From: Macrostomum lignano
Lineage: Eukaryota
Length of the DNA: 64,000 nucleotides
NCBI GenBank assembly: GCA_002269645.1
Contig: NIVC01001881.1
Location: 1 to 64,000 of the forward strand
Reading direction: 5' to 3'
This document shows, piece by piece, positions 18,986 through 45,500 of this stretch (positions are counted from its first letter, which is position 1; every line of letters starts with the position of its first letter). A program made the position numbers and the translations under genes. Below the pieces are notes generated by a model. That model worked only from the letters and a program-made list of their open reading frames with translations. It searched no databases and was not told the DNA's origin.

Positions 18986-19044
18986 ACACCAACCTTGCTA
19001 CGAGTAGTTAGTAAGTTAGGAAGTTTCAAAGAACCCGAGGGGCG

Positions 19045-19090
19045 AGGGCCAGATAGAGGGGCTTCGCGAGCCGGAGTTTGCCAACCCCTG
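19045..19090. mobile_element. Solitary Charlie-type hAT terminus
   Basis: AGGGCCAGAT..CGAGCCGGAGTTTGCCAACCCCTG (reverse complement CAGGGGTTGGCAAAC) followed by CTCCAGAG, which resembles the NTCTAGAN target preference. No partner end found. Confidence 0.5.
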
Positions 19091-19239
19091 CTCCAGAGTT
19101 TAAGAAATCAATGGGAAACTGTTGACGCGGGCTTCTGATTTCAAAGATCTTGTCTGTGGTTGAAGGCTTCTATTCTGTTTTTGCTCTTCTGCCACACTTG
19201 CACCTACTACCCCCTGATTGCCTCTAATTGTGACTTACT

Positions 19240-20269: not shown

Positions 20270-20465
20270 CCTAGCACACTTTAATTGACATAGGCACACA
20301 ACTGGCAAGAGGCATTACTACCTATTCCGCCAACTCCCCTGAGCAAGCACATACTCACACAGGAGTGTATAGTGGCCCTAACTTTATTTATTGTTAGGCA
20401 TGTACACTTCATTGCACCTTGGGGGGTTGGCTCTCAAGGCCATTAATTGCACAAGCAAAGGCTAG
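20270..20465 (-). mobile_element. SINE family body fragment
   Basis: Reverse complement of the 12061/45845 SINE body (GTGCAATTAA..GCCAACCCCC..AAGTGTACATGCCTAAC..GTTAGGGCCACT). Confidence 0.6.
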
Positions 20466-22491: not shown

Positions 22492-23187
22492 ATGTCGTCC
22501 TACATACGGTTTGATTCTGCTGCCGCTGTCAACTCTCGGGTCCGGAGTGGCTCATCTGGTGGGAGCCAGCAGACACTGACTTCGGCGGCGGCGGCGGCGG
22601 CGGCAGCTAGGATACCAGCAGCTGGCACAAATGTTTCGCAGCCTAAAATCCGTGTGCCGGCAACAATGACCATACAAGTGACAGCACCTCCGTCGGCAGC
22701 CTCATCTGTGACAGAGGCAACCGCTGCGGTTGACGAATGGAACGACGACGCGGCATTGGCTGAGCTGGACTTTGCCGCCATCGACGAGCTGGAAAAATCG
22801 GCGAACAACACCAGCACTACTGAAGCTGCATCGTCTTCCGCGCCTTCCAGCCGCCGGCCTACAAATTCATGGAGTGAGACCTTATTCCGGCTGTCAGAAA
22901 ACCTCTTTGATGATAGCAAGCTCGAAGTTGATTTGCACACACAGGAGCAGCGGGATGGTCCATCGGCAACGAAACGGTTGCGTGCGACCGACCCAGAAGG
23001 CGACGCTTCAACGATTCCAAAGTCAAGTGTGCCGGATCTGAACCCCCGTCATGCTTTGTCTGGCTCTGGTGACAACGACTGCAACATCACCCGGATAGAG
23101 GTGCCAGGCTCGAACCCGCCTTCGCCGACAAATTCAGCTGCAGCAGTAGCAGCAGCGGATGCCGGGGTGGCGCTGCAGCGTCGATAG
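22492..23187 (+). CDS. Hypothetical 231-aa Ala/Ser-rich protein (single ORF or terminal exon)
   Basis: ATG at 22492 to TAG at 23187 in a GC-rich island with exon-like composition. Contains the acidic motif DEWNDDAALAELDFAAIDELE and a basic TKRLR. No known domain recognised. Confidence 0.45.
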   Translation: MSSYIRFDSAAAVNSRVRSGSSGGSQQTLTSAAAAAAAARIPAAGTNVSQPKIRVPATMTIQVTAPPSAASSVTEATAAVDEWNDDAALAELDFAAIDELEKSANNTSTTEAASSSAPSSRRPTNSWSETLFRLSENLFDDSKLEVDLHTQEQRDGPSATKRLRATDPEGDASTIPKSSVPDLNPRHALSGSGDNDCNITRIEVPGSNPPSPTNSAAAVAAADAGVALQRR

Positions 23188-23685
23188 CAGTGGCAAAACG
23201 GAATGGTAGCAGATGGAGTGAGTAAAGATGCTGACTGATTGTTAGCTTGTTTGGTTGTTTGTTTGTTGCTTCTGTATTGTTAGTATTAGCTATTGTCATT
23301 ATTGTTATTAAAATGAGCTACTGAGTCGGAAAGAAGAAGCTATAAGCCGTTTTTTACCTACATGCTGCTGTCTACCGAGCATTCTGCTGTTATTGGCGTC
23401 GACATGGCCTTGCCTTTGGACAGTTCATTTTCTTCGTTTCCAATTCAAAAGTAAAAGAGCAAGTAACAGCTGGCTGGCTGGCTTGATATTGAAGGGGGTG
23501 GGGACTGAAGTACACCTAATAAATAAGAATAAAAGCCTTGACTGGAATGCACTGTGTTTATTGTCTATGGCACGCACTCTACGAAGATTTTAAATGCTAT
23601 TTAAGAAAGTTTTCTTTTTATCCTCTCTCTAAAACGAATGCGGAAGACGCGAATTGACTATTTATAGATTGCTAACTACTATATA

Positions 23686-24392
23686 TACCTTTTTACGTTC
23701 TATTTGATAAAAACTGCAACCAATTTGGCCACGGCTCAGCCTGACGCAGCCGCAGCAATTTTCCATAGACAGCCACCGCTAGCGGCAACCAATTTGGTAA
23801 AAACTGCGAGCTATTTTGCCAGCTTGAAGATAGCAGCTCAATAGCATAACAATAACGATAAAGAATGTTAACAATACATGCACGAAGTCAGAACATTATG
23901 TCCTCAGCATTCAAGCACCGATTGAAGTACGTCTGGGAATGGTTGATCCAGCGCAGGCACTTGAGAGGCGTGATGCAGTTCAGTGCTTGCTGCACTTCTC
24001 TCTTCAGAATGCGCATTCTGTGCTGATGCAGTGTCGCACCTGCTGCAGCAGCCAGTCCAGTATCTGCCAACTCTACCAGTTCGTTCATACGTGGTCACGA
24101 TGTTCCTCACTGTCGGTTTCTTCATCCCCATCATTCTGCCAAGCTCTCTCCAGTCGTCGCCACTCCTGTACGCTCTCACGATTCGCTCTCGATCCAGCTG
24201 ACTTATCTTTTGGTACGGCCCACGATTCGCCATCAGAGCAGCTGCTATCTTCAAGCTGGCGAAATGGCTCGCAGTTTTTACCAGATTGGTTGCCGCTGGC
24301 GGTGGCTGTCTATGGAAAATTCTATGTCTATGGTCAGGCTGAGCCGTGGCCAAATTGGTTGCAGTTTTTATCAAATAGAACGTAAAAAGGTA
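23686..24392 (-). mobile_element. Internally deleted Tc1/IS630-like DNA transposon (707 bp)
   Basis: ~153-bp TIRs (23686-23838 and 24240-24392) flanked by TA on both sides; ends are ambiguous by 2 bp. Inside, on the minus strand, ATG 24233 starts an HTH (RGPYQKISQLDRERIVRAY..TVRNIVTTYERTGRV), joined to a C-terminal remnant (ITPLKCLRWINHSQTYFNRCLNAEDI). The DDE core is missing. Confidence 0.85.
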
Positions 24393-24565
24393 TACTAGCA
24401 TGCATATAAAAATGGATACATATATATGTTATTAATTGTGCATTAATCAACAGCAGCAGAAATAGAAGGATAAATCATTAGATCCATCAACTGTATAATA
24501 ACTAGCGAATAACAGATAATTATTATATATGAACTTTTACAACTGTTAATTAAACGTGCTCATTA

Positions 24566-24695
24566 GAGAGAGAGGGAGAGAGAGGAGAGGGGAGAGGGGA
24601 GAGAGGAGAGAGGAAAGAAGGGAAGAGATGAGAGGAGAGAGAAAAAGGAAAGAGTAGAAAGGAGAGATTAGAGAGTAGAGAAGAGAGGAGAGAGG
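24566..24695. repeat. GA-rich low-complexity tract
   Basis: Degenerate (GAGAG)n. Confidence 0.9.
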
Positions 24696-24729
24696 CTTGT
24701 GCATGCTTTCGCGTCTCACTCACTCACTC

Positions 24730-25293
24730 ACCGAAGAAGTTAGAGCAGCGTCCACAGGCATTTGCTGCCCGAAATTTGAATCAGCGGCGGTTGCGGCAGC
24801 CGCCTCCGCAAAGCTACTTATGACTTATTGCCACTCAGTCTGCGTGGCGATGGTATGCATGTCGGGACGTACAGCACTCTGTTGCTCGTCTGCTGACGCA
24901 GCCGCCGTTGCTGCCTTTCTACCGCACACACCGCGGTGCTTGCGGATCTGCCGGACAAATGCGTTGCATCCGGCGGTGCACAGAACAAGCCGCTCATCCT
25001 CATTATACACATTTGGCTCCATGGACAGCTCAAACAACTTCCAAAGGAGCGAGCGGCGAGCCTCTGTGTTGGCGGCGACCCAGCCGGCATCTGTTGGGTA
25101 CATATGCGCTGGAAAAGCCTGCCGGGGATGCCAGTCCCGTAATAGGTTGTCAGCGTGGTGTCGCATAAAATGGCGCTTGCGCGATGCTTTATTCAGTACC
25201 ACCAAGCACACCAGGCAGAGTCCCGAATTACCGCCGGTACATATTGGCTGAAAGCATATTTTGATGCGAGCTCGTACTATGCTGGGACAGACC
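24730..25293 (-). pseudogene. Exon-like segment with a C2H2-like motif and an in-frame stop
   Basis: Reads LCLVCLVVLNKASRKRHFMRHH (C-x2-C-x11-H-x3/4-H). After the TAA at 24825-24827 the same frame continues as VISSFAEAAAATAADSN.. to a GTGAGT donor near 24730. Confidence 0.25.
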
Positions 25294-26924
25294 TTTCAGA
25301 GGGGAACGAAAACGAAAGCGAGACGAAAAATACTTTGTCTATGGCAGTCACGAGCCAATAGGAAAGAACGGGGGGGGGGGGGGGGAAAGGGATGTTAAAA
25401 GTGAAGATCGAGCGAGATAAAAAGAACTGGCTCAGATTAGCACTCCATTCTATTCTTTCCTCCATGGTTAAGCTCCGCTGCCAGCCGGCATATCAGCCAG
25501 AGTACGCCCCAAAGCTTGGGGTTTCAGCCATAGACATTACTATAAGGAGGGGTGTCTGCCAAACAGACTCCAACACTCCAACTCATGAACGATCGATTTA
25601 GCCGCACAGGACAGACTGCGAATTCGGGGTTTGTACCATAAACTAAAAAAGCAAAGACTGGCTGCCACATGCACTGGCGCTTGGTCTCCCCCACTCTGTC
25701 TGTGGGTCAGACTACCAAACGGGCAGTTTGGCCCATAGACAACTACTGTACCAACCGATTTGGTAAAAAGTAGAGCGGGGCGAGCGCGAGCCGAGGAGCA
25801 GCAAGAATTCATTTCCTAGCTCCCAGCTATACTGACTCTATGCATCTCTTCTTGGAAGCAGCAATTGGTCTTTCCAGCTATACTATATACTTGGGTGAGT
25901 GAGCGCACGATTGGATATCATATACACAGTTGCTATATATTATGTATTTGTGTATTGACGAAGCCCATAAAGTTTTAATTTTCTTCTTTCCCTTCCGATT
26001 CGCAAATGCTAGCGAGTTACAATACGAAAGAGCATAGACCATACAACTACAAATGACATAATTCTGACATATGCATTGATACAAAACGGAACTTTCTGTG
26101 AGGACGGGCAGACTTTACGGGCAGATTTGAAATTTCATGTAAATCGTGTGTCGACTAAGTACACAACATGCGTACAGTGTAGACCGCGTGACAGTACAGT
26201 GCACACTTCAGGTACAGCTGTACTCTGAGCCCAAGCAGATCAACTGTATAATTTTTAGCCCTGCACGCACAGAAGTAGTGCAAAGTTATTTTTAGACCAC
26301 ATTCATCCAGCCAGTCTTGGTGCGCATTTCTTGGAAATGTATAAGTGGCCTGTGCGGAGCACTTCAGCAGTTTTTGCTTTTGTCCTTTGCGAAGTAAGAT
26401 TAGATAGAAAAAATATGGTATATATACGCCATTTGCTGGAGCAAGATCAATGGCTGCCATTATTTTCTAGCGCTTTACGTATACTCTGATAACCTTCTGA
26501 GCTAAATCGAAACGATAGCAAAAATGTCTGCAAAAGCAGACTCTAAAATGGAGGACTACATTGCTGGTGAGACTATTAATTCAATCTCTTTTATAGGAAT
26601 TCCCTCAGGACAGGAAAAGATAGGCCACTTTGGTTGGTTTTGATTTGCATACAGAAGCAAAACTTATGATTGAATAAGCAACTGTCAGGTGATAAGCGCC
26701 AAAATGAACGCCAGAAGACAAAACTGGATGGACAATCGGCAATAGACAAACAGCATGCAGTATCATGCATGATCGCATGATAAAGGTTTTTCAATTAGTA
26801 GTCTTGGGTTCGCTCGACTCAGGACCATCAGATGCAGCCTTCGACTTTCTAATCGCAGAAATTTAAATAACAAAACAAAACCATAATACCTAAATTTAAA
26901 GAATTATTTAACTCCTCATTACAG

Positions 26925-27181
26925 AATGTCAGGCACTGAATCAGTGGGAGGCTGAAATCCTGACAACCCAGCGTCACGTGACCCATAAAGAGCGGCTGAC
27001 ATTTCCAACTGAGACGGGCAGCTCACAGAGCTATCGCATATTGCCGACAGAGGAAGGCAGCCTCAGTCTAGACGAGGCTGTGTTCACCCAGATGAAGCGG
27101 AGACACAATAATCAACTGAAAATGCGAGGCGCAATCACTCTGGATGCCTTCAGGGCCAAACTGCTGCAAGAGTTCACTATG
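26925..27181 (+). CDS. Isolated coding exon; candidate N-terminal (OTU-like first half) exon of the RNB-helicase gene at 39249-52134
   Basis: CAG acceptor at 26922-26924, open frame, ends ATG|GTAGGT in phase 0, which matches the phase-0 acceptor at 39249. A possible first exon 26524-26566 (MSAKADSKMEDYIA, G|GTGAG, phase 1) fits its phase-1 start. Confidence 0.45.
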
Positions 27182-29149
27182 GTAGGTCATTGAATCATTA
27201 TTTTGTTTCCACGTTTCTACAAGTATTACAGTTTTTTAGGGCGTTGGCTTCAGTTTAGCATTCTTGAGGCTATACGTACATTCGTTTGCACAAACCAACG
27301 TTGAATGTGCAACTAATAGCTGGCAGAGGAGCGGAGCACATCTTAAAAGTGCTTTGAGCAGTGTTGTGTTGTTTTTTAAGCCATATCTTATATATTGCAC
27401 GGCGCATTCGTACACCCGCGAGTGACTCATCAACATGTCACACTGACACTACTACTACTACCAGGAGGGATTGTGTGTGAAAGTAAAAATATATGGAGAG
27501 AAAGGCGACCTGTGGATTTGGGGGGTGCCCCTCGTCCTTCATGCCCTTACACCTATCTAAAATAACAACACATTTCAAAACATCGCCGGTCTATAAAGAG
27601 AAGCTTAACGTTTTACATGACGTTAAACATATATCATATGTATCATATCATATCATATCATAAGGGCTTTTCAATGAACATCCTTATAATCTCTTGAGCC
27701 ACTGACTTTGGAGACAGCAAGCCTGGACCATAAATGAATAGTATAACTGGATCGCCAAAAGCTCGATTTAGGCACTAGGCACTCAACTAGGCACCCAATC
27801 TCGAAAGACCGATCTAGATAAAAAAGTTCAGAAATTAGGGCTGTCAGGTTTGACTTGGCCATATTTACATCCATTGAGATACTTATGACAACCTTAAATG
27901 AACCCTTAGCACTTGACTTTAATAAGTGTTGACTGAGCCTTCACTACCTGCCGACTATAGATATTGATTTAGTCCATTAGAGTGCTGACCGTATCAGTTC
28001 CGTCTGGCTAAGCTCTAAGTCATTAACCTTTTGTTCATATGAACGGTAAGCCCCGAAAAGGTTATAAAATAAGCTGCAGGAGTCACTTCTCAATATAGGC
28101 GCGACGAATGCCCATCATTCCGACAGAGACATCCTTAAGTATTTCAATTATTCCGTAATTACAAACCTAAAGCTTTGTTTAATAATGGCTAATCTCGCCT
28201 CCTTTCCAAAAAATGGCTGTGACTAAGAATGATAAGACCATGAAAAAAACAAGATGCTATATCACTTAGCCATAGACCGGAAAGACTTAAGAGCTTGTTA
28301 GTTTGCAGAGCGATGTCGCAACCCGGTGGGAAAAAAATGGTCGCCGCGACGGCTTCTGTTTGTTGCGTTTACGACGGCGGAAACTCCGTTCGAGTGAACG
28401 CCGAGTTTCCGTCGCCACAACGGTCGCTGCGACGGCGGTCGGAAGACCCATTAGCGACTCTTATATGCGTACGATACTACTTGTATCGTGTAGTAGTGTA
28501 GATGGACCATGATATATCCCACGAATTTTTTATTTTTTCGGAATAAAAAAGAAACGAAATATAGATGCAGTCCTTTTCAACAAATAAACATTATGTTGCT
28601 ATGGGAAATGCTTTTTAGCATTATATTTATAGAATTACCTGATTATTCAGTTCCTGCTAGAGAAGAAAAAATTCACCCATAGACATACTTCAAAAAAGTA
28701 CAATAATATCAAACTGTTGTTTATTAAGCATACACGAAGCGTACAAGAAAGCAATCGTTCACAATATTAAGTACAATAAAGTACAATAAGGTATAAATGG
28801 CCTATAGGGTCCATTGTACCCCACAGACAAATAAGCAGTCATCAATAGAAATATGGCGTGCATTAGCTAACTAATTTTCTGATTATGAACATTGAGCAAC
28901 TACTCCAGATCAGAGCAGTACTCGAGTTCGAGCTCTTGCTCAACTCAGAGTTTGAGGTGAAACTTGCCAGTTATTGCTCACTTTATTCATACGGCCAAAT
29001 GACTAATTCAATGGGCTTTCTATGCACATAAAGTAATAACACTGTTATGTACAGAAGCTGCAATAATAGTCGATTTATGGGGTCAAAAAACTCATTATTT
29101 TTTAAACGTTTGGGGTTTAGAGTAAAAGATCAGCTGTATCATTTAACAT

Positions 29150-30045
29150 ATAAGGACACCTAATTTAGCGCCCCAAGGACATCTAGTTTGATCCCCTAAG
29201 GACACCTAATTTATCGCCCCAAGTACATCTAGTTTATCGCCCCAAGGACACCTAATTTAGCGCCTCAAGGACATCTAGTTTGATCCCCTAAGGACACCTA
29301 ATTTATCGCCCCAAGTACATCTAGTTTAGCGTCCCAAGGACACCTAATTTATCGCCCCAAGGACACCTAATTTAGTGCCCCAAGGACATCTAGTTTAACG
29401 CCCCAAAGACACCTAATTTAGCGCCTCAAGGACATCTAGTTTAGCGTCCCAAGGACACCTAATTTATCGCCCCAAGGACACCTAATTTAGCGCCCCAAGG
29501 ACATCTAGTTTAGCGTCCCAAGGACACCTAATTTATCGCCCCAAGGACACCTAGTTTAGCGTCCCAAGGACACCTAATTTATCGCCCCAAGGACACCTAG
29601 TTTAGCGTCCCAAGGACACCTAATTTATCGCCCCAAGAACACCTAGTTTAGCGTCCCAAGAACATCTAGTTTGACCCCCTAAGGACACCTAATTTATCGC
29701 CCCAAGGACACCTAATTTAGCGCCCCAAGGACATCTAGTTTAGCGTCCCAAGGACACCTAATTTATCACCCCAAGGACACCTAATTTATCGCCCCAAAAC
29801 ATCTAGTTTGACCCCTAAGGACACCTAATTTATCGCCCCAAGGACACCTAATTTAGCGCCTCAAGGACATCTAGTTTAGCGTCCCAAGGACACCTAATTT
29901 ATCGCCCCAAGGACACCTAGTTTAGCGTCCCAAGGACACCTAATTTATCGCCCCAAGGACACCTAGTTTAGCGTCCCAAGGACACCTAATTTATCGCCCC
30001 AAGAACACCTAGTTTAGCGTCCCAAGTACATCTAGTTTGACCCCC
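29150..30045. repeat. 23-bp minisatellite with a dimeric (46-bp) higher-order pattern, ~39 units
   Basis: Alternating CCCAAGGACACCTAATTTATCGC and CCCAAGGACACCTAGTTTAGCGT. Confidence 0.95.
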
Positions 30046-30665
30046 ACAGAGAATCGCTCGCTGTGAGAAGCGCCAATTGACAACTGCTTTCAGAAATTTT
30101 TCTTTGAGACTCACTGTATGAGAATCTCTTTCATGCGAGAATTGTCCCTTGCGAAGAACCTTGCAAAAATCGATTCGCAGAGACCCTAACCTGACGTTTT
30201 GATAACTCAAATCTCCAATCCATAGGCGCGTATGGTAATTATAAAGCTTCCTCTCTGGCTCAATGGCCTCCATAAAATTTAGAAAATGCTGTGGAAAAAT
30301 TTCGGCATGCAGTTGGCTTTTGCGAATTTTCTTCTTGATGAATAGCTATTTGCATATGCCATTTTCTAACGCCCTATAAACACATTTTACAATCGGCTTT
30401 CGCGTGGCTATATCTGAGAATAAACATATTTTCAAGACAGCTAATTATGGAGGTGGGAACAGTAAAATGGGGCATCTTTGTGAGAAGGGCAACTGAACCA
30501 CAAAAGGGAAATTCTTAGCTTACTATATGCACCTAAAAATGAGGCATAGAAATGAGATTTTGAGATTGGGGGATTTTTGCGTCACCGATTGTCGGGGGAT
30601 TTTCCGGAGAATTCCCAGGGGGGCTTTGTTTTGACGGGAGGGTGATAGTTGTGCACATATGATGG

Positions 30666-33600
30666 TTAAGGCGATGGAGACTCGTCAGATAAGTCCTGCG
30701 AATCAGGATAGTGCCGCTTTCCGCTGCCCTGCTCGGGTGCACTTGGGCGCTTCTTCGCCTTCTTGCGCAGGTTGTCCCCCGCATGCTTAAGAGCCGAGAT
30801 GACGTGTTTTTCTACATCTCGCTCAGATGGCCTCTCATGAGGCTTGTCGTCTTTGTACATCGTGGAAACGGCTCCTGGAATTGGATTGGTGGTTTTATTC
30901 TGTCAAATTTATTCTACTCTATGCTCCATAGTCCCTACTTTAAGTAGACATTATTCACTTGAATTTGTCTAAATGTTTCATTCTGAACCAGTTTCATTGA
31001 AGAAACTATACTATAAAATTAGGCAAAATGATTCTGATTCTAGATTTACAATTACACACTTTCGGATTTCTGTAAACTTACGCTTCAGAAGAGGAAGCAG
31101 TGTTGTCTGGAAGCCAAGGCTGTCATCTGTTCCCGCGCCGCCGGACCTCTCGGCCAAGCCTCGACCGCAATAGTTTAGCTGGGCCATCATTTCAGGGGTG
31201 ATACACTTTAGCAGCATCCGTCGGATGGTGCTCGCAACACTGTCACCCCGGCAGCGTGCCAGTTGCGTGCGCAGAACTTTCTGTGCCTCCTTATCTGATG
31301 CCAGCTTTAGATAGCCCGCCCACGAAGCAGCTGGTTGCCATTCAGCTTCGGGCAGCTCGATGATAGTGCCGCCAACAGTCGAGTTGCCCTGCCTGTTGAG
31401 GGCCGCCAGAATCTCCCGCTGCTGCTGTTGTATTGTTGCGTCTCGCTGCTCTTGGAGCTGCTGGCCGCGCAACACCAGCAACATCAGCTGCGAGATACCC
31501 TTCAGACTCGCCAAGTCACCGAACTTGGCTGTTAAGTCCATCATCAGCCTGCGAGCGGCTTGGTTCTCCAGTTGTAGGCCCACGCTTTCCCTGTTGCGGC
31601 TCTGGGTGCTTGAGCTAGCAGCTGTGATAGCAGCAGCAGCAGCAGCAGCAGTGAAACTCTGGTCATGTTGAGGCCCTGGTGTCGATGTAGCCGTAGCGGT
31701 ATCTGTTGGCTGAATAGAATAGGGGTGGGGGACAAATCATTACACTCATTACTCCGGATCTGCGAATACATTTATGTCATTTTCTTGTATAAAGCATATA
31801 CACCTTATACTTTCATAGTCTCGAATTCGTACTTAAAATTTAATGCGAACATAGCATAGCATTTATCAATCACAATTACTAATCTTGCACACTCATTTAT
31901 TTATTACTTTGAAGTTGCTGCTGTCGAGACTATAGTGACTAAAATGATGTGCAAAGATGACCAGGGGACCGGATTAACCTTTCCCAAGAATTAAACATGT
32001 CAAGGCGCTCACTATAGTATAAATATACCGTACCCACGGCCAAGCGCCTGAGCGTTATAAATATTTTGTTGTACTTTTTATTTGCGACTCAGTTGTCATG
32101 ATTTACCATAGAAAATTTCCTTTTACAGTTCTTTCTCGCAGTTAAGTTTCTCGCTTCATATCTTCTCATCGTTTAACTCATAATATATATACTTGAATTC
32201 AGCCCAAGTTGACCTATAATTTCACTACAGCGTAAATCTAAAAATTGGTCTGCCATGACATTTTCATCGTCAGGTAGTGAGACACAAGGTGTGCTATGCT
32301 TACCCGCACCGAACGATGCAAATCCGACGGAGAAGCGGCTGCTGCTGAAGGTGAAGCTCGGTTCTGCATGGGTAGTAGTTGAGCCGCCTCCATACTCGGC
32401 TTAGGTACCACAGAAGCTCCATGTGGATGGCTCGCGGATGCTGCTGGCTGCCCGGAACCGACATCAGCCTCTGAATCCATCGTGCCATGATCCGATTGGA
32501 GTGCCTGCACAGATAGATCGCATAGTATGGGAATGGATTATATAGTTTATCCAGGTGTATGATTATTTCAAAGCCCGAAATTATCTCACGTTATGCTTAG
32601 ACTATAACGACGCAACAGTGAAGGGAAAGGCCCGAATTATACTCATTTTTCTAAGCTAGCAGAATTATATTTTACCTGATGGCTTGTGGATAACTCCGTT
32701 AAAGCAGCCCTTGGCCTTAGCTTAGAGTTTATTCTTAGAAACGTACAAACAAAAATAGGAGTAAAATCATTCTCCTTCCCTGTCCGCAACCGTTGTTTTT
32801 ACCCATAATCCGCTCATTCCTTTCCACTCTGCCCTCCGACCACTCCCACACTTCCATTTGTATTTCTAAGAACGAATTCTTTCTACTGCACTGCAAAAAG
32901 ACAGTCAAAAAGCTTTTTCGACGGCGTGATTTTTGGCTCCTGTTCTGATCGATAGACACCTGGTTTCTTAATAATTTAGTTTGGTAAATTATCTTTTACA
33001 TACCTGCACGGGCTTCAGCAGCAGCCGCTTCTTCACTCCGGGACAAATAACGCGTGGCGAAACCTGAAGGAACATTCGCTTCGGGCGAAAGTCTTTTTCA
33101 AGCCGGCACCTGCGGCAGTACTGTATGACTCTTGTAAGATCATACCCGTCATCAAGCGATACCTGAGAAGTAAGGATTGGGTGTAAATCTAAATTGTATG
33201 GTATAAGTCGTCCCCGACTCCATTTTATTTGTATGCATTATATAGATGAAGGTAGCAGGCTGCAGGTCTTGATAAAGTGCGGACGGTTTTTATATTCTAC
33301 GGAATACCTGCGGAATGGTGTAAAATATTTATGATGCGGACATTGTTTTGGCTCCAATGGCTTCCTCATCAAACGATGCAATATTTCCCCGCATTCAGCT
33401 ACATGCTATACCATCGTGGCCCTTGTTATATGCACTTTTCAATTTCCGAAAAATGTGCACTGCTCTATTTCCAGTAGTGTAGTCGGGCATAGGAATCATA
33501 ACAATCAAAGTGGAAAAACTGGTAGAAATTTCTGCTTCTTGACACGGTACGGTGGACTCAATTTAAACATTGTTATTGCCTAAAGAGTCTGTTGTGGCAG

Positions 33601-33953
33601 TAACAGGCTTTGAAAGCCCAGGAAAAGCAATTATATTAAGGAATTTATTCTATTCCGCATTCCGGTTCCGCAGTTTATAAAGAGCCGCAGGCTGCAGCTG
33701 ACCAAACAATAGAAATAAGATAAAAAAGTCAATATCATTTGCTTACCAATATAACTGTTGCTTCGTAGAAGGCGTCTCCGTAGATGGCGCTGCAACGGAT
33801 CCGCTCCGTCTCATGATCATCACTTTGAGCAAAGCCTATCCAGTCATTGTGACTGTCAAACGTAGCGAATCGCCCTTGAAGCCTTATTTGTTCAAAAGGT
33901 ACTTCAACTACTTCCAGGTCGCAACTAAAAATTACTACGAAGCGCATTGCCAT
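30666..33953 (-). CDS. DUF4806-like transposon accessory protein, 5 exons, 467 aa
   Basis: Exons (minus strand) 33953-33747, 33162-33004, 32504-32304, 31709-31082 and 30874-30666; all GT-AG, phases 0/0/0/1, uninterrupted frame. N-terminus MRFVVIFSCDLEVVEVP. C-terminal LARCRGDSVASTIRRMLLKCITPEMMAQLNYCGRG..DVEKHVISALKHAGD fits the DUF4806 pattern (by eye). Confidence 0.75.
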
Positions 33954-34194
33954 ATACGAGCGTACTAGAGCTGAGAGATAACTACAGAAACGATCAGATA
34001 GATATGTCAGATGCTCATAGGAATTGTTCTACGAAGTGAATAGTATCTGACTCAGAAAGTCGTAGTCTGTTCTTAAATGCCACTTAATTCTTTTGTGAAC
34101 CAATGAGAAAGCTACTGCTCTTTTTATCCTCTCTCTCGTTTGCATTCTTTTAGTCCTCATGTTCAGCGACAGCCAATGGGAGATCTTAGTGCAT

Positions 34195-34860
<666 letters not shown>

Positions 34861-35394
34861 CTTGCCTATGAGATACATTGTGATGGTGGGTAGGAGGGTA
34901 TGCTGTGCTATGTGGCGCCACTCTGTCTGTAACGATGAGACTTTATCGGTACACCCACATTCCGGCTGGCCATGAATATGGAACTGAGTGTTCGCAAAAA
35001 GGCCCTCAAACCCCCACTACCCCTATCTTTTACATTTCTAAGTTTGAAAATCGGAAATGAAGAGCGTGGGAAAATTACTTGAATTGGCTTAGAATGTTAA
35101 GATTTAGTATATTTAGATTGCTCTTTGTTTGCCGGGGCTTCAGCACACACCCTCCATCTTGCACCCTGCCTTTTCCGGATCCACCAAAATACGCAACAGA
35201 CTGAGTGTTGTGATCTGTACCCTGGCCCCTCCCCTTCCTTTGATGCAGGCTCCTGCTTGATTTCCCTGCTTGATTAGTTGCTAAAATGCTATTGCTAAAA
35301 TTTGTGATTCAAAGGTAACGATAAAAATAAAAAAAAAAAAAAAACATTTGTATTTGTATTTACTAATACAGCTTTACAGCTATTTGTATTCATT

Positions 35395-37418
35395 TCTCCG
35401 CCTTCGAGTATCTGGAAAGCTGATTAGGCTAGAGATCCGATTCTTTCTGCAAAAGACACCGACTGGGGTGCTCTAATTATCTGTAGAGTCTCATATCTGA
35501 ATCTACAGATACAGCTTGGCAGTTGCTGATTGATTTTTTTGGCTTTCCCTATTAAAATACATTAGAATTTCTAGGAATCTCCGCTTTTGAATATCTGGAA
35601 AGCTGATTAGGCTAGAGATCCGATTCCTTCTGCAAAAGACACCGACTGGGATGCTCTAATTATCTGTAGAGTCTCATATCTGAATCTACAGATACAGCTT
35701 GGCAGTTGCTGATTGATTTTTTTGGCTTTCCCTATTAAAATACATTAGAATTTCTAGGAATCTCCGCTTTTGAATATCTGGAAAGCTGATTAGGCTAGAG
35801 ATCCGATTCTTTCTGCAAAAGACACCGACTGGGGTGCTCTAATTATCTGTAGAGTCTCATATCTGAATCTACAGATACAGCTTGGCAGTTGCTGATTGAT
35901 TTTTTTGGCTTTCCCTATTAAAATACATTAGAATTTCTAGGAATCTCCGCTTTTGAATATCTGGAAAGCTGATTAGGCTAGAGATCCGATTCTTCTGCAA
36001 AAGACACCGACTGGGGTGCTCTAATTATCTGTAGAGTCTCATATCTGAATCTACAGATACAGCTTGGCAGTTGCTGATTGATTTTTTTGGCTTTCCCTAT
36101 TAAAATACATTAGAATTTCTAGGAATCTCCGCTTTTGAATATCTGGAAAGCTGATTAGGCTAGAGATCCGATTCTTTCTGCAAAAGACACCGACTGGGGT
36201 GCTCTAATTATCTGTAGAGTCTCATATCTGAATCTACAGATACAGCTTGGCAGTTGCTGATTGATTTTTTTGGCTTTCCCTATTAAAATACATTAGAATT
36301 TCTAGGAATCGCCGCTTTTGAATATCTGGAAAGCTGATTAGGCTAGAGATCCGATTCTTTCTGCAAAAGACACCGACTGGGGTGCTCTAATTATCTGTAG
36401 AGTCTCATATCTGAATCTACAGATACAGCTTGGCAGTTGCTGATTGATTTTTTTGGCTTTCCCTATTAAAATACATTAGAATTTCTAGGAATCTCCGCTT
36501 TTGAATATCTGGAAAGCTGATTAGGCTAGAGATCCGATTCTTTCTGCAAAAGACACCGACTGGGGTGCTCTAATTATCTGTAGAGTCTCATATCTGAATC
36601 TACAGATACAGCTTGGCAGTTGCTGATTGATTTTTTTGGCTTTCCCTATTAAAATACATTAGAATTTCTAGGAATCTCCGCTTTTGAATATCTGGAAAGC
36701 TGATTAGGCTAGAGATCCGATTCTTTCTGCAAAAGACACCGACTGGGATGCTCTAATTATCTGTAGAGTCTCATATCTGAATCTACAGATACAGCTTGGC
36801 AGTTGCTGATTGATTTTTTTGGCTTTCCCTATTAAAATACATTAGAATTTCTAGGAATCTCCGCTTTTGAATATCTGGAAAGCTGATTAGGCTAGAGATC
36901 CGATTCTTTCTGCAAAAGACACCGACTGGGATGCTCTAATTATCTGTAGAGTCTCATATCTGAATCTACAGATACAGCTTGGCAGTTGCTGATTGATTTT
37001 TTTGGCTTTCCCTATTAAAATACATTAGAATTTCTAGGAATCGCCGCTTTTGAATATCTGGAAAGCTGATTAGGCTAGAGATCCGATTCTTTCTGCAAAA
37101 GACACCGACTGGGGTGCTCTAATTATCTGTAGAGTCTCATATCTGAATCTACAGATACAGCTTGGCAGTTGCTGATTGATTTTTTTGGCTTTCCCTATTA
37201 AAATACATTAGAATTTCTAGGAATCTCCGCTTTTGAATATCTGGAAAGCTGATTAGGCTAGAGATCCGATTCTTTCTGCAAAAGACACCGACTGGGATGC
37301 TCTAATTATCTGTAGAGTCTCATATCTGAATCTACAGATACAGCTTGGCAGTTGCTGATTGATTTTTTTGGCTTTCCCTATTAAAATACATTAGAATTTC
37401 TAGGAATCTCCGCTTTTG
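35395..37418. repeat. 183-bp tandem satellite, ~11 near-identical copies
   Basis: TATCTGGAAAG recurs at 35409, 35592, ... (period 183). Only a few variant sites (GGGGTG/GGGATG, TCTCCG/TCGCCG). Internal inverted repeat ATCTGTAGA..TCTACAGAT. Confidence 0.97.
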
Positions 37419-38945
37419 ATCTATGACATCGAGAATTAGAGCGCGCCATTGAATTTCTCGTAAAATTGTGATTGAATGCTAATGCAAATAAAGTAATTTT
37501 AATTCAGCTCATATTTAATTTAAATAACTTAATTTCAAAGCAAACGTTCTTCCTATTTGTCGTGTAATTTGCGGCCGCTTTGAGGCTTTGTCATTGGAGG
37601 ATTCATCATGCGGCGGGGATGAGGTGGGGAACAGTTAAGGGGTGTGGGGAACGAATAAAATTAATGAGCTATGTTAGACTGTGTTAGATTTCCCGCGGGG
37701 ATCTAATCAGACCAATAAGTCGACATCACAGACCAATGAGTGTTCTGTAAATCTAAAAGATTGCTTGCTTCTTCCCGTGGCCCCAAGTGTTACTTGCATA
37801 CATTCGTATTGGTGCAGTGAAGTAAAGGTCTTACAAAGCTGTTTGCTCATAGAGTAGTGTCCTATGCCCTACTTATAGTAGGCACAAGACAACACGTTTA
37901 AACTTCGGAAGACTAATAATGCATTATAATGTACAACAAAATTCCAAGTCTGATTTTTACACGATGAAGAAGTCGATATTTCAACACCCTTGATTAAACC
38001 AGGACTCAAATTTCCCTATTTGCATCCCAGCTGCATAGCAACATATTTTCCCTTGGATACCATTGTTTCTATCACCTCAGCTGTTCCCATTAAGGATTAT
38101 GATGTCCCAGATTGCACATTAAAGCGAACTGACTACATTTTAAGCAAAGAAACGTATTCGTTATGCCATAATCGGCAAAATGCAATCAATAGATTTATCC
38201 ATGACAAAGATCAATATCCTTAGTCAAGCATTTGATTAACGAGTTCAAAATTTTAACAGCAGACAAGACGTTAAATTTCTATGCAACACTTTAAAATTTG
38301 CACTTTAAACAGCCAGTGCAGAAATAGTCGTATACAAGAAAAAATAATTTGTTACTATGCGGTTGGACTGCTAGGGTAACAAATTCACAAGGAGTCTGTT
38401 CGCCTGCAAGCCAAAATTAAATAAGGTTGGGGACTTTAGAGGTTTAATTTGGCCTAGACCGTTGTATTAAGAAGATACCTATTAGTAGGTAAAACATCAT
38501 GAAATGAAATGACATAAAATGACCATTTATCTAAAAAGTACCGATTCCAAAGCTCTATAAGTCTTTGAAGGCGACTCAAGTTACGCTTTTATAAGCCATA
38601 TAAAATTTATTTGCCTGAGAAAGGCTAATGCGCAGTTCATACTACTGAGTAGTATTCTGCATACATGTGGGTCGCCAATTAGGCTAACAGTCGAGTGCTT
38701 GGCGACCCGGAGGTTAGCCGACCCATTTTAGTACGCGGGCGCGACCAGGCGCATAACCTCTGATCAAGCGACCCTTTGGCGACCATGTCAAATTATTGAT
38801 ATTTCACTTCCTTAACCCCGAACTAACCTCAAACAGCCCGTTTTGAGTCATTTGGAGTACATTAGTAGCAGAAAAAAAATTCGACCCGAAATACGACGGA
38901 CAGCCGTCGCAACTCCGTCGCCGCGACCATTTTTTTCCCATCGGG

Positions 38946-39190
38946 AAATCACACGGATACGTACGCAGACACACGTACATAGTGTACAGCGGCCCTGACT
39001 ATATCGTGTTTTAGCATTTACTTTTTCTGTGCCTTAGACGTTGGCCCTCATGATTGTGAATTGCATGCACTACGACGAGTCCGAGGCCAAGTTTTATGCA
39101 TCTGACTAAACAAGAGACAGTGCACGGAATCGAACCAGGGGTTTACTTACCGCTGAGCTGCTCTGGCTTTAGACTCTGCCCTCGGTTGGA
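38946..39190 (-). mobile_element. SINE copy truncated at the right end of the EnSpm-like element
   Basis: Minus strand has the B-box GGTTCGATTCC (plus GGAATCGAACC at ~39126) and the body motif GTCAGGGCCGCTGTACAC. It stops at the TIR. Confidence 0.55.
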
Positions 39191-39248
39191 ATGATATTAA
39201 TTTCACCCCTAACTTTCTTCTTATCTTCTTCCTCCCTATTTCACACAG

Positions 39249-42200
39249 CCGAACGGTGACGCGCAGCAGCAACAAGAAAGCCGCAGTACAAGCAGCGACA
39301 GTTCAGCCGATACATTGGACTCAGCTGAAACGGCAGTCGCTTTTCGACGCGTGTTCGGTTTAAACATTCGTATTCGACCAGGAAATAAAACGTACAAGAA
39401 GGACTTGCTGTTTGGAAGCTGCGACAATGGCAAGGCCGTGATTGACATCGGCCACGTATATGGCCAGATATACGTGCCCCTGGGCGAGGCAGCGAGCAGT
39501 GGTGAGCGTCGGGGTGAAAGTACGAGTATATTTGATAAATTTGAGATGCCTGTGCTGCCAACGTCTGCGGTGTGACAGGATTGCTTATTGAAGGTGGGGA
39601 GAGGCGCCTAAGCCACTGCAAAGGGGACGTTAAAAGCCACTGCAAAATGGGCGCGAAAGCCACTACAAAAAGGCGCGAAAGCAATTGATAGGGCGCACAA
39701 AAGGCTACCGAAAAGAGGCGCCAAAGCTACTGATAGGGGGCACAAAAGGCTACCGAAAAGAGGCGCCAAAGCTACTGATAGGGGACGCTGATTGCCTACC
39801 AATAAAGCTGGGTTAGTGTGAGCCTGTTGCTTCCCTCCCCTGGCTATTCCCGTGAATGTGGCGCATATTGAAAATGCATGCAAACTATTTCCAAACCCAG
39901 ACTCAGTGGAGGCCGAACTTCGCAGCTCAGCTCTAAGCAGTATAGTCGAACGAATCTCAACAGAAATTCAAAGAGGCCAACAGAAGAAACAAAGCCAAAA
40001 AAATTATGAAAGTTCTGGCAGCAGAGAATCGTCGACAGTTTCTGGTTCAGGAGACGCCGACTCAGCGGTTGCAGCCGCGGCTCGAGCAAGTAAACTCAAC
40101 CGCATCCTGGACCTGTTCGAGGGCGTGCAACAGGTGGACAATTCGTGCGAACCGACAGCCGGACCCGTCAATGTGGAGTTTCAGCGTCGTTTGACTGAAA
40201 ATCCCGCGTGCTACCGACTGTGCACGGTGAGATCCGAGCAGGGCGCTTCGGGCAAAGAAATTGGCGTGCCTGTTACTGAGCAGGAGGACGGCTTGAGTCG
40301 GATTGTGCTCAACAACCCCGGTCGCTGGCTGCCTGGACAGCAGGTAATAATGTAGGCTTTGTTGAAAGTGTAATTCTTTATGAACTCAAAACTGCGCAGT
40401 TTATTGCAGTCATTGTAGTAGTATGGTTGGGGTCCCAACTCCCACCCTGCATTTCCACCGCAGTTCAGAGCTTAATTTATGAAATAACCTTTTTTTCCAA
40501 ACCATATATTTTAGCTTTAAGTAAAACCCTTCACAAATTAGCCTAATTAAGTTTTCTACATCTCTAAATTACCTGTCTTGGCGTACATTTAACTACAGCG
40601 TTTAATCACAGTACATTCGAAGTATAAACGGACTTCTGCCTTGACTACTCACCACCAGGTGGTTGTGGAGCTCCTGGACGAGGTGCAGCCCAACGGTGCA
40701 TCCAAGGGCCGCGTCCTCGGCTACTACAAGCGCCAGTTGCGCTACAACTTCCTCGGCCACCAGCAGCTGCAGAAACTCCTGGCTGAGCAGCCGAACCGCT
40801 TCAAGATTTGCAAACTCGAGCTGAACGGCGTCCAAGGGGGCTCGGCGGTTCCGGTCGACCCCAGCGACCCGATCGCCCGCATCGAGATCAACGGGCGCGA
40901 GAACTGCGGCAGGGCCTGCGCCAACGACCAGGTGGTGGTGGAGATCATGGAGATCAAAGGCGCTGACCCGGCTAATAAAGAGGTCAAAGGACGCGTTGTT
41001 GGCATGCATCAGCAGGTGCGAATTTGTTAAGCTCTTTGTCGACTTATTTCTAAACTCTTAGGGCATCGATTGGTTACAGAAAATGGGTTTGGGTCGGGCA
41101 TGCGGTCCTGAAAGTCAGTACTGTGAGAACTGTGACTGTACTGTCACAGCATAACATGCGCAACCTTGGGAATCACTCGGCCAACACACACATGTAAGTC
41201 GCTATGGGCTGAGAGCAGTCACGTGACTACTATTCCGTCCAATAGCGACTTGAATCGGGTGAATCCCTAGGTTGATGATAGGCCGGGTGAATCCCTAGGT
41301 TGCGCCCAAGCATGTGTCACAGTACTGTCAGAACTGTGACTTGAGTCTAAACAACTATCATTTAAAAAATTTCCAACGTAAAAATGAATCACAAAATGCT
41401 CAGTGCTTTATGAAAAGACAACTAATTTACAGTATTACAGAGCCTTCTCAATCACTTCTAACAGGCGGAGAAGCTGCGCTACCAGCTGTTTCTCTGCGAA
41501 GTGCTCAGCAGCGTTGGCGCACTGATGCGACCGTTGTGCGGCACCTTCCCGAAGATTAACTACGACAATTCGATTGCTCAGCATGCTTTGAAGAATGAAC
41601 CAAACGATTTGCTCGATGGACACCAAGAGCGCAGCAGCACAGGGCAGCAACAGGTGACTCAGAAACAAAATCATGCGCGAAACATTGACCGCGACTTTGT
41701 GTCGGTCTTCTTACCGAAAAGGTGTGAGCTAATTTTTAATTACATTATATTGCTACTTTTGTTTAATAATTTCAGCAACGACGTTGAATGCATTTAAACA
41801 ATTTTCAAATCTTACTAGGGATTCGACTGGTAAAATCTACTTTGAGCACGACCGCTGTCAGCGAGTGAACAAAGAATTCTGTGAGCAGACTTTTCTGGTG
41901 TGCTTCGAGTATTGGCGTCTGGACAAGAGCTACCCCATGGGAAAGGTGGTCTACGTGCTCGAAAGCACCGACGGCTCGCTGGCAGAGGCGTTCGGCCTCA
42001 TCCAAATGCGACACCGGCTGCCTCGTCCGCTGCGAGATTCAAAGAAGCTGCGCAATCAGGTGGCTAACGTGCAGCAAAAGGACAACAGCATGGGTCTAAG
42101 GGACCGGCTCGACATGCGTAAGGTGCTCACCGTTACCATTGACAACCCAGACACGCGGGACATGGACGACGCAATCAGCTACGAGCGTTGCTACTCAACA

Positions 42201-42470
42201 GGCGTAGAAACCGTCGGTGTTCACATCACCGACATCTGCGAGTTCATCGGCATCAAAGGCTCCCCGCTGGACCGTGTGGCTCGGGGTCGCCTCCGAACCA
42301 TCTACCCGCCTAAGGTGGGCAAGTCGCAGCAGCAGGTGACACCAAACCACATGCTGCCGAAAACTCTGGCTGAAGACGTGCTCAGCCTCTGCGAAGGATC
42401 CGACAGATTCTGTCTGAGTGTGCTCTTCAAGTTCAAGCGTGACGGAAAACACGTAAAAGTAAGATATCGC

Positions 42471-42505
<35 letters not shown>

Positions 42506-45500
42506 GGGTGTTTTTTGGTTGAGTGAGCACGTGCTATACTCAGCAACGATTGAAAAGTCGTCAGTGATGAATTTCTCTTGGACGATTCTGAAATAAAAGA
42601 TACGAGAAAACTGATTGGAGTAGCTTTAATCCGTCCAACCCTCGCACACCGCTCCCCCCACTTTATTGCTCAACTCAAGTCGGCCGCGGCGTAGCTGAGT
42701 TGAGTCAATCGCAAAGAGGCGCAGAGGCGCAGAGATTGCAGAGATTTTTAGGCGTTGTGAAATTCAGGCGTTATAAAATTTAGGCGATGTGAAGGAGGCT
42801 CTATCTTCAGTTTTAGGCGTTGTGAAATTTAGGTCTTATGAAAGCGTCTTGTGATTCGTATAGAGACAATTTTAGATTGCAGCGTTAAAGTCTGACTATC
42901 TAAAAATTCGCCTGTCTGTCTCGCAGAACGCCTGCGTAAGGAGAAGTATTAAGTACAACGTATAATCAGCAACAGTCAAAAGTTCCACCTGTACAAATCA
43001 CGCGTAGTTAGAGAGAAAACTTTCTTTTAAAACTCACAGTGAAAGGTGAGTAAAAATATTTTTGCTTGGTGAGGTGGAACTTATGACTGTTGTTGGGTTA
43101 TATATTACCTCACACTCACAGACAGTAACCGTTGAAATGTCTGCAATGTAAATAACGCCACTCTATGTAGTTCTCTCGACTATCGAAAACAACATAGGGC
43201 GTAGGCAGACGCTCTATTTGTAGTGGTGAAATTATCGATCGAGTAACGCCCAAATCCAATGCGTGCAGGGAATAGGGGGTTAGGTCCCCAGCCCCCAGCC
43301 AGGCCGATACAGTTTGCCTTTCCTCTCATATTTGACTTTAACTCTCTCCTTACGTCGTATTGCTCTGATATTGGCTGAGTTGGATTGAGCCTGCCCCCTA
43401 GGCACACGGTCTTTCGTCTTTCGTCCGTCTTGCGTTCACGTGTGTACGAGCTACGAGATAAATGCTTGCAGGCTGCAAACCTTAAGAAAGAGGAGTAATT
43501 TTTCCCTTGAAATATATTTGCTACATTAAATTTCAGTTATGCAACGCACAAAAACTAATATTTCTTACAAATTTATTTGCCAATGACGAATCGAATTATT
43601 ATAGATATTTAGATATTCATGCAGTTAGTTATTTAAATAAATATAAAATTAATGCCTAGCTCTAGCTAAACCAGCCGACACGCCGACTTCAAATTCATTA
43701 ACTAAGATTGTGTATGACATCTCAGATTCTATGCGGACCTGATGTAATCGAATTAGCTTGCAATTTTACCTACATTACCAACTTTTAGAGCCCTGCAAAC
43801 CTCCTCTGGGAAAAGCCCGAGTTCCACAAGACCGTCATTCGCAGCGACCTCCGGCTCAACAAGATCGACGTGCAACCGGTGCTGCTGGAGACCGAGCGCA
43901 GCGCCGACAGCTTCGGAGACCGCCTGACTCCCGACTTCGTGTCGATGCTGCGCTCTCTGTGGGACATCGCTCGACGCCTGCGGCTGAAGCGGCTTGGTGA
44001 GGCCGGCTTCCAGCTGCAGGATGACGACTTCTGCGACGACGACGACGAGCAGGGATCCATCGGGCGGACCTTCGAGACCAGCTGCCTCATCGAGGAACTC
44101 ATGGTGCTGGCCAACCTGTCGGTAGGTCAGTGGTTGGCAGAGCAGCAGCGGCCGGTTGTGGCTCGAGTCCAGGACGAGCCCCGACCTGTCGAGGTCCAGA
44201 ATTGGCTCGGTAAATTCGGTCAGACGCTGGTGCACATGCCGCGACTGCAGCGCGATCTTCGAGGCCTCAATGTCTCGTTTAGTCTGTGCAACTTTCCGCT
44301 GTCTCTGTCTCGAGCTGACTATGACTTCATCATGAAGTACCAAATCGGTAGGCCTCGCGATTGCGTTCTACGGCTCATGCACGACAGTCGCCATCCGCAC
44401 ATGATGCTGGCCCTCAGTGAATGGTTCTCCGTCACACAGCCCGCGCACTACGCACCAACGGCGGACGAGACGTCAGCCAAAGAAGCTCGGCGAAAGGTGT
44501 ACCACTTCAGCCTGCAGCAGGCGAACTATTTGCACTTTACAAGCCCCATGCGTCGCTATCCGGATATTGTTGTCCACAGGGCGTTCCGAGCGGCGATTAA
44601 CAATCAGCAGCAAGGCCCGGCGACAGGAGAGACGTCCGAGAGTCTTAGCGATCTGTGCGACTCGCTTCGAACCTGGAGCGTAGAGTCAAGATGTTCGAGA
44701 AGGACTCCATGAGCTACGCCTACGCCAGCCGTCTGAAGCGACGCCCACAGCAAGAGCTCGTGGTGTTGCGCTCCATCGATGATGGCGAGATGTCTTTCAC
44801 GAGTAGCCGTCTTCGCCGCATGCCCAAGACACTCGGAGTCGTGAAGATGTCCAGCTTCGGACTGGATGCTCGACCTGAGCCTCGAGGACTTGAAAAGTTT
44901 CGCTGCAAATGGAGCCGACGCATTTTCGTGCATTCTTCATGCGAAGACTCATCAAGCTACAACACTCCAGTACTTCATTACATTGGCAGTGAGGTTCGTG
45001 TTAAGCGAGACGTTTACGTCCAGCGCGTCAACTGCGATCCTGTAGTGAAGCTGCGCAAGGACTTCATAAGTTCCGGCGCCAATTACGAGTCAGTTCGGGG
45101 CCAGTTTCGCCAGCTGCAAGACGTTGTGCTTGAAGATCAAGGTGCGTGGATGATCACCTGTGAGAATGACCAGCTCGCTTCGGAGCGAATGAACAGCTTC
45201 TGGTGTCGGGCAAGCCAGTCCAGTTCTACCGCGAGTTCGCGGTCGGCGATATCATGCGGCTGCAGTTCCGAGCACAGTTGCGTCAGGGCCTGCTAACGCC
45301 CAGCGTTGCGCTGATCGAAGTGTGCGGCAGCCACACGGTGTGCGTAACGCACAAGGACGATCCCGTGCGCTGCTTCGCGGAGGTGACGGATGTCAAGTCC
45401 AAGCCCTCGTACCGCGACATCGACGAGTACGCGACCATCTGGCAGCGCATCGTGGCCATCGAGTCTGCCACCATCGCAGCATCGACTGATGACAGCGTCA

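Follow-up and report, generated by a model that had tools for sequence, protein, structure and literature searches.

Two short exons at the 5' end of a helicase-like gene of the flatworm Macrostomum lignano raise the question of which gene they belong to and what kind of protein region they encode. The exons lie in a 64,000-nucleotide (nt) stretch of contig NIVC01001881.1 (GenBank assembly GCA_002269645.1, positions 1 to 64,000 of the forward strand), hereafter referred to as the window. An initial annotation of this DNA had joined exon A (26925-27181) in frame to exon B (39249-39501) across a 12-kb intron thought to contain a transposon, had placed both exons upstream of coding sequence for OB-fold, RNB exoribonuclease, and superfamily 1 (SF1) helicase domains, and had read the joined peptide (A+B) as a pseudo-OTU domain with a possible role in ubiquitin sensing. 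The gene in question, here termed paralog A, is one of two copies on the contig. The second copy, paralog B, is convergent with the first (a tail-to-tail, inverted duplicate) and encodes protein P0004 (2326 amino acids, aa), and a near-identical homeolog of paralog B on another contig encodes P0005 (2385 aa). Our analyses indicate that A and B are probably coding exons 2 and 3 in one of these two convergent HELZ2-like M. lignano genes and that they encode a lineage-specific N-terminal region.

Homology and Coding Status of Exons A and B

Open reading frames (ORFs) of 90-120 codons are abundant throughout the window, and exons A and B therefore required independent support. Both exons have canonical splice sites and show the in-frame join and exactly the peptide that had been claimed for them (Table 1), and the acceptor of exon B is preceded by a strong polypyrimidine tract (...cctatttcacacag/ccg, where the slash marks the splice boundary). 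When the 343-aa product of exons A, B, and C (A+B+C) was compared with 1.84 billion cluster representatives using phmmer, a single match was returned, and this was P0004 (E 5.2e-75, 54% identity). The alignment pairs query residues 1-343 with residues 12-336 of P0004 in one uninterrupted stretch. The N-terminus of P0005 is the same as that of P0004. Examination of paralog B and of other family members had been proposed as a check on the exon join, and the annotated products P0004 and P0005 indeed carry the same N-terminus in contiguous form. Taken exon by exon, A shares 54% aa identity with P0004 residues 11-99 and B shares 62% identity with residues 133-188.

The gene structures of the two paralogs agree as well. 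In paralog B, exons are ordered as exon 1 (MTIMGFMFNS plus 1 nt), A', B', C', and D', and the 1/A, A/B, B/C, and C/D introns occupy identical alignment positions with identical phases in both paralogs (A/B, phase 0; B/C, phase 1; C/D, phase 0). Nonsynonymous differences between the paralogs are significantly rarer than synonymous differences in all three exons (pN < pS, Fisher's test), with ratios of nonsynonymous to synonymous divergence (dN/dS) of 0.30 in exon A (p 2.6e-5), 0.31 in exon B (p 9.7e-5), and 0.29 in exon C (p 7.6e-9) at dS values of 1.2-1.55. The dN/dS of approximately 0.3 in exons A and B indicates that both evolved as protein-coding sequence.

P0004 derives from the transcript-based annotation of assembly Mlig_3_7 (NIVC01). 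This assembly was generated with PacBio reads and Canu and was polished using Pilon with Illumina and RNA-seq reads, and its GenBank annotation was built from genome-guided transcript assemblies (StringTie/TACO, TBONE, TransDecoder) (PMC5730564). Judged by sequence comparison, the A/B join proposed in the initial annotation is the homologous join. Homology to P0004 and the matching introns likewise uphold the claim that the two exons belong to one gene and are joined across a very large intron, N-terminal to OB, RNB, and SF1-helicase domains.

Other searches with the N-terminal region returned little. A word-indexed protein search with A+B yielded no match at E<=1, and the same type of search with a query spanning exons B-F yielded three bacterial RNB proteins only and missed P0004, though this protein is in the collection. 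A search of NCBIfam with the N-terminal alignment returned nothing. Collectively, exons A, B, and C are predicted to encode a region of ~330 residues with no detectable relatives outside of the gene family, in which two short conserved blocks would be separated by a length-variable Ser-rich linker and followed by a helical and low-complexity stretch.

Domain Architecture Downstream of the N-Terminal Region

The N-terminal region lies ahead of an OB_HELZ2 fold, an RNB domain (3'-5' exoribonuclease) whose catalytic residues are intact, and a single SF1 helicase of the UPF1 type, in this order. In P0005, the family architecture comprises the orphan N-terminus (residues 1 to ~337), OB_HELZ2, a weak CSD2-like signal, RNB (E 1.9e-54), and one SF1 helicase. 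Pfam returned no family for P0005 residues 1-337 at E<=1 and nothing above noise for exon C. With no Pfam family in this region and with one helicase only, the initial observation that Zn fingers and a first helicase are not seen here is confirmed. Weak OB_Dis3 matches were detected in exon F of paralog A (E 0.025) and at P0005 residues 530-581 (E 0.077). A weak Pfam match to OST-HTH/LOTUS at the start of exon D (40659-40810; E 0.009 in paralog A and 0.098 in P0005) lies just ahead of the OB_HELZ2 match, overlaps it, and may be noise.

In paralog A, the translation contains the RNB motifs DNPDTRDMDD (DxxxxxDxDD) and FTSPMRRYPDIVVHR, and the conceptual translation contains the helicase motifs GPPGTGKT (Walker A), DEAG, and VALTRARRGLIIIG. 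AAA_11/AAA_12 were found on P0005 and on an annotated 569-aa fragment. Exons H-O encode the UPF1-like SF1 helicase and a Q/W-rich repeat tail, with a stop codon at 52132-52134; with P0005 as a guide, the later junctions of paralog A are canonical, in frame, and at homologous positions. The long (QQWQQQQRQQQP)n Q/W-rich tail (51449-52134) is present in paralog A only; the tails of paralog B and P0005 are short and unrelated to it. The architecture put forward initially is thus retained with respect to OB_HELZ2, a catalytically intact RNB, the SF1 helicase, and the Q/W tail, and is revised with respect to the pseudo-OTU domain, as discussed below.

Integrity of Paralog A

Several observations weigh against assigning A and B to an intact gene with a lineage-specific N-terminus. 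As assembled, the ORF of paralog A stops at 44707-44709, after 1057 codons. The gene listing, which covers the record range 41964-62134, is without a called gene over the RNB exons of paralog A (41964-46737), and the 3' part of the paralog is listed as a 5'-partial product of 569 aa (46737-50292) and a product of 56 aa (51964-52134). Exon 1 of paralog A is a candidate only, and the 27181/39249 junction in paralog A is predicted from sequence. Finally, both structural models of the N-terminal region are of low confidence (see below), and a very remote relation to a known fold is possible.

The first of these observations bear on a different explanation, which we consider possible but doubtful, namely that paralog A is decaying or recently dead, that A and B have ceased to contribute to a functional RNB-helicase mRNA, and that function is confined to paralog B and its homeolog. 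This explanation is compatible with the exon homology of A and B. Relative to paralog B, exon G carries 1-nt deletions at 44672 (a C, in a C-run) and at 45180 (a G), both of which shift the reading frame and the first of which is followed by the stop at 44707-44709. The missing gene call and the 569-aa and 56-aa fragments point in the same direction, as does an A/B intron that is about nine times the length of that of paralog B, when compared to an average of 1.1-1.4 kb for M. lignano introns (PMC5730564). However, every other exon is open, its splice sites are canonical and homologously placed, the catalytic motifs are preserved, and dN/dS is below 1. Two single-nt corrections are sufficient to turn the 16 exons into an uninterrupted ORF of 2539 codons with canonical junctions throughout and a stop at 52132-52134. 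Polishing is unreliable in duplicates that are 94-96% identical, and a C-run surrounds the first deletion; thus, both indels could be assembly errors. The 569-aa product ends in a shifted frame and was not reproduced from canonical junctions when one or two of these were varied. Paralog A is either a recently disabled duplicate or carries residual long-read indels. The proposed fusion of the N-terminus to the RNB-helicase is sound with respect to homologous gene structure, and the claim must be amended in that the ORF is not intact as assembled, due to two frameshifts that had been missed.

Relationship to OTU Domains

According to the initial annotation, A+B represents a catalytically dead (Ser-for-Cys) OTU-like domain that would act as a ubiquitin sensor and couple ubiquitinated ribonucleoproteins to RNA decay. 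We regard this as very improbable. The order of predicted elements loosely fits an OTU fold, with a strand (YRILP), a loop, and a helix, later a helix and strand (AETAVAFRRVFGLNIRIR), and a C-terminal ...GHVY... strand. The best local match in HHalign pairs the same helix-strand segment with the OTU 'EIxAL...I.V' element, and the His in DIGHVYG is invariant in the three sequences (paralog A, P0004, and P0005). No significant alignment places this His on the OTU His.

Profile searches argue against the assignment. An hmmscan of A+B against Pfam returned neither OTU nor Peptidase_C65, and no family at all, even at E<=10. An OTU profile constructed from the sequences of eight OTU domains recovered 50 distinct chain sequences from the PDB, all of which were OTU-family deubiquitinases (E 1e-46 to 8e-5), including OTUD5, OTUD3, OTU1, OTUB1/2, nairovirus vOTUs, and bacterial OTUs. 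The same profile, which detects distant viral and bacterial OTUs, matched the three-sequence N-terminal alignment in HHalign with a probability of only 0.35% (E 0.17) over 17 columns, where ETAVAFRRVFGLNIRIR was paired with an OTU helix-strand element. Removal of the linker gave a score of 15.7 and a probability of 0.7%, and this score was reached by 16 of 200 column-shuffled alignments (8%); across runs, 17-41 columns were aligned. The phmmer search with A+B+C (1.84e9 sequences) returned no OTU protein and recovered paralog B only, and sequence searches of the PDB with A+B and with the alignment returned nothing relevant.

Structure prediction was uninformative with regard to an OTU fold. AlphaFold 2 models were of low confidence, with a mean predicted local distance difference test (pLDDT) score of 33.6 for a 318-aa model and 46.7 for a 196-aa model (predicted template modeling score, 0.41), and the underlying multiple sequence alignment comprised three sequences only, two of which are near-identical. 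A Foldseek search of the PDB with the better, albeit unreliable, model yielded a best E of 1.9 and template modeling scores <=0.15, with no OTU or papain-like fold among the best 50 listed.

OTU domains have a Cys-loop whose catalytic Cys (in D-G-N-C) sits where a helix begins. The candidate segments, TEEGSLSLDEAVF (paralog A) and ATEWEDLSLVEAVF (paralog B), contain neither a Cys nor a DGN motif. A pseudo-enzyme could be without the Cys, in which case the segment provides no positive evidence for an OTU domain. In addition, a Ser-rich linker at the exon A/B junction, which varies in length (24 versus 34 residues), splits the putative domain and would break it up. Since only two of the sequences are independent, residues that appear 'conserved' weigh little. 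When compared to OTU deubiquitinases (PF02338; OTUB1, OTUD1/3/5, yeast Otu1, nairovirus vOTU), A+B is alike only in the loose order of secondary structure elements and in the 17-column helix-strand match, and is unlike them in being without significant sequence or profile similarity, a Cys-loop motif, a catalytic Cys, or a supported His-loop alignment. On the basis of these comparisons, the by-eye OTU alignment is no better than chance, and neither the pseudo-OTU identity of A+B nor the ubiquitin sensing attached to it is borne out. The OTU interpretation of A+B should not be propagated.

Divergence Between the Paralogs

Divergence between the paralogs is unevenly distributed along the gene. 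We compared positions 26925-52134 of the window with positions 10001-24863 of L001, the locus of paralog B, of which positions 17671-34863 are 100% identical to window positions 64000-46808. Exons A-C differ between paralogs A and B by a dS of >=1.2; the value drops to 0.41 for exon E and to ~0.1 for exons D and F. Identity of individual exons to P0005 ranges from 48% to 98% at the aa level, and an acidic insert in the helicase (48198-48874) exhibits 49% protein identity only. This pattern suggests patchy gene conversion between the inverted duplicates that spared the 5' module, which would yield mosaic divergence of this kind.

The uneven divergence is also relevant to a speculative reading to which we attach very little weight, in which A+B is an extremely diverged papain-like/OTU-type domain or a new small domain. 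Macrostomum would have recruited it to target a HELZ2-like antiviral or anti-transposon nuclease, as a module that diverges fast. A Ser48/His155 pair is invariant in the three sequences available, and under such a reading the 5' module could escape gene conversion, which keeps the catalytic part homogeneous.

Start of Paralog A

The first 2 nt of exon A complete a split codon, which calls for an upstream exon. An in-frame ATG that could serve as a start is absent from the beginning of exons A and B, and exon B is without any ATG. A scan for ATG codons followed by phase-1 donors upstream of exon A identified 26524-26566 as the best candidate for coding exon 1 and thus for the start of the gene (Table 1). 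The candidate contains a second possible ATG at 26548, and its donor (CTG/GTGAGA) is the same as the exon-1 donor of paralog B. It is separated from exon A by 358 nt, versus 522 nt in paralog B. A similarity search with the upstream region of paralog B was empty, and the candidate shows no sequence similarity to exon 1 of that paralog. The spliced leader of M. lignano ends in ATG (…TTGCATG) (PMC8629364) and was considered as a source of the start codon; it was rejected, being out of frame with the exon-A acceptor, and paralog A, like paralog B, must therefore have a cis-encoded exon 1.

That exon A might instead close the coding sequence of an unrelated gene upstream, with the helicase gene starting within the 12-kb region, is scarcely credible. 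In favor of this reading, the ORF does run past the donor (as ...FTMVGH, to a TGA at 27191-27193) and exon B has no ATG. Against it, the exon-A homolog in P0004 (residues 11-99) is followed immediately by the exon-B homolog, the intron yielded no conserved sequence resembling an exon, and the scan for alternative starts gave a best candidate upstream of exon A.

Exons B and C are separated by a 399-nt intron. The acceptor of exon C was initially placed at 39823 and was replaced by 39901 after comparison with P0004. Tandem repeats of 22-45 nt (39603-39784) occupy most of this intron.

The A/B Intron

The A/B intron is in the same position and phase in paralog B, which argues that it is ancestral. 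In paralog B it consists mostly of (TC)n, which matches a (TC)n tract of paralog A at 34401-34862. If this tract is ancestral, then sequence was gained on both of its sides and not by one insertion. In paralog A, the intron would have grown from ~1.3 kb to 12 kb through satellites and other sequence, and the 99% identity among copies of its 183-nt satellite suggests that this array was very recently amplified or homogenised.

The measured length of the intron is 12,067 nt. The '10.6-kb element' described within it reduces to one pair of 31-nt inverted repeats, with no similarity extending past the 31 nt, no matching target-site duplication in the flanks as read by eye, and no further copies of the element in 82 kb of the contig. 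Several ORFs lie on the minus strand of the intron. The largest of these, with 241 codons, had no Pfam match and no homolog among 5.8e9 proteins in a word-indexed search and is not recorded as a called gene, and neither is an ORF at 31014-31544 (minus strand). Screening intron ORFs of >=89 aa against Pfam yielded no family match and no signal of a transposase, reverse transcriptase, or integrase. The description 'transposon-containing' is unproven, and the data show a repeat-expanded intron.

Other Features of the Window

Transposon-related sequences were identified elsewhere in the window. Two ORFs of 588 and 271 codons (14178-15941 and 16251-17063, plus strand) are of the hAT transposase type (DUF4371, E 4e-15; hAT C-terminal dimerisation, E 2e-11). 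An ORF on the minus strand (23907-24428) matches a helix-turn-helix domain of Sleeping-Beauty/Tc1-type transposases (PF25787, E 5e-7, under the gathering score) and is probably a Tc1/mariner remnant, as judged from this match. Exons of a homolog of SIN1/MAPKAP1, an mTORC2 subunit, were found at 8613-9362 and probably also at 7554-8198 (both minus strand), with matches to CRIM (E 5e-19) and to the SIN1 Ras-binding domain (E 2e-7). An ORF at 842-1189 (plus strand) encodes a WSC carbohydrate-binding domain (E 4e-14), and an ORF at 22492-23184 (plus strand) is not recorded as a gene. Between the paralogs, a 21-nt tandem array (54459-54739) yields laddered self-matches and reads as GAKMSAC repeats in one frame.

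Table 1. Coordinates of paralog A, its A/B intron, and the part of paralog B within the window (slashes in sequences mark splice boundaries).
Feature	Position	Strand	Description
Candidate coding exon 1 of paralog A	26524-26566	+	MSAKADSKMEDYIA plus 1 nt (G); inferred from scan for ATG...phase-1 donors upstream of exon A
Exon A	26925-27181	+	Acceptor ...cattacag/aa, donor atg/gtaggt; 2 nt of split codon at entry, ends in phase 0
Exon A content	26925-27181	+	Conserved block 1 of orphan N-terminal region: ECQALNQWEAE...YRILPTEEGSLSLDEAVF...LLQEFTM
A/B intron	27182-39248	+	12,067 nt, phase 0; homologous intron in paralog B 1,275 nt
Inverted repeat, left arm	28322-28352		31 nt; 94% complementary to 38915-38945
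23-nt minisatellite	29152-30038		~39 copies; inside A/B intron
Largest intron ORF	31014-31736	-	241 codons; one of several minus-strand ORFs in intron
(TC)n microsatellite	34406-34855		Common to A/B intron of paralog B
183-nt satellite	35395-37419		11 copies, 99% identical; inside A/B intron
Inverted repeat, right arm	38915-38945		31 nt; 10,562 nt between arms
Exon B	39249-39501	+	Acceptor cttcttcctccctatttcacacag/ccg, donor agtg/gtgagc; phase 0 in, phase 1 out
Exon B content	39249-39501	+	Ser/Gln-rich variable linker, then conserved block 2 (DSAETAVAFRRVFGLNIRIRPGN...DIGHVYGQIYVPL)
Exon C	39901-40343	+	Remainder of orphan N-terminal region (DSVEAEL...NPGRWLPGQQ); phase-1 acceptor cccag/ac homologous to that of paralog B
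Exon D	40659-41015	+	OB_HELZ2 OB-fold; Pfam PF25049, E 3e-30; 96% identical to paralog B
Exon E	41465-41721	+	Linker / CSD2-like region
Exon F	41819-42458	+	Start of RNB domain, catalytic Asp motif DNPDTRDMDD; Pfam RNB (PF00773), E 5e-24
Exon G	43789-45747	+	Rest of RNB and following region; one uninterrupted 2-kb exon in paralog B
Exons H-K	46412-46788, 47322-47516, 48198-48874, 49130-49789	+	Within series H-O coding for SF1 helicase and tail
Exons L-O	50153-50632, 50831-50996, 51178-51345, 51449-52134	+	Within series H-O coding for SF1 helicase and tail
Paralog B, 3' part (P0004)	56808-64000	-	Convergent with paralog A; minus-strand helicase exons; N-terminal exons beyond window, record 64001-71670

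Comparison with Known Systems and Implications

Vertebrate HELZ2, a 3'-5' exoribonuclease that is induced by interferon, contains two UPF1-like helicases (Huntzinger et al. 2023, PMC10516660), and HELZ2 has been reported in some invertebrates, namely corals and molluscs (PMC10516660). The flatworm protein shares with the vertebrate enzyme an OB_HELZ2 fold that leads straight into an RNB domain, in which the catalytic Asp motif is complete, and a UPF1-like SF1 helicase (AAA_11/AAA_12) on the C-terminal side of RNB. Unlike the vertebrate enzyme, it is without N-terminal CCCH Zn fingers and helicase 1 and has a region of ~330 residues without detectable homologs in their place, and paralog A adds a Q/W-rich repeat tail at the C-terminus.

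The RNB exoribonucleases of the DIS3, DIS3L2, and RNase II-R family have the domain order CSD1-CSD2-RNB-S1. The flatworm protein resembles these enzymes in that its RNB core follows OB/cold-shock-like folds (the weak OB_Dis3 match), and differs from them in that RNB is fused to an SF1 helicase and in that a PIN/CR3 N-terminus was not detected.

Returning to our preferred reading, in which A and B belong to one of two convergent HELZ2-like genes, analogy with human HELZ2 suggests that the enzyme would act on structured RNA by unwinding and degrading it. The N-terminal region that exons A, B, and C are predicted to encode most probably serves as a lineage-specific module for accessory functions or targeting and not as an OTU domain. 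If the gene is functional, flatworms carry a trimmed nuclease-helicase of the HELZ2 type, with one helicase and no Zn fingers, that is equipped with a lineage-specific N-terminal module. In mammals, HELZ2 is induced by interferon and acts as an effector against RNA viruses and LINE-1 (PMC10516660), and invertebrate variants with swapped N-termini may therefore show how enzymes of this kind are targeted.

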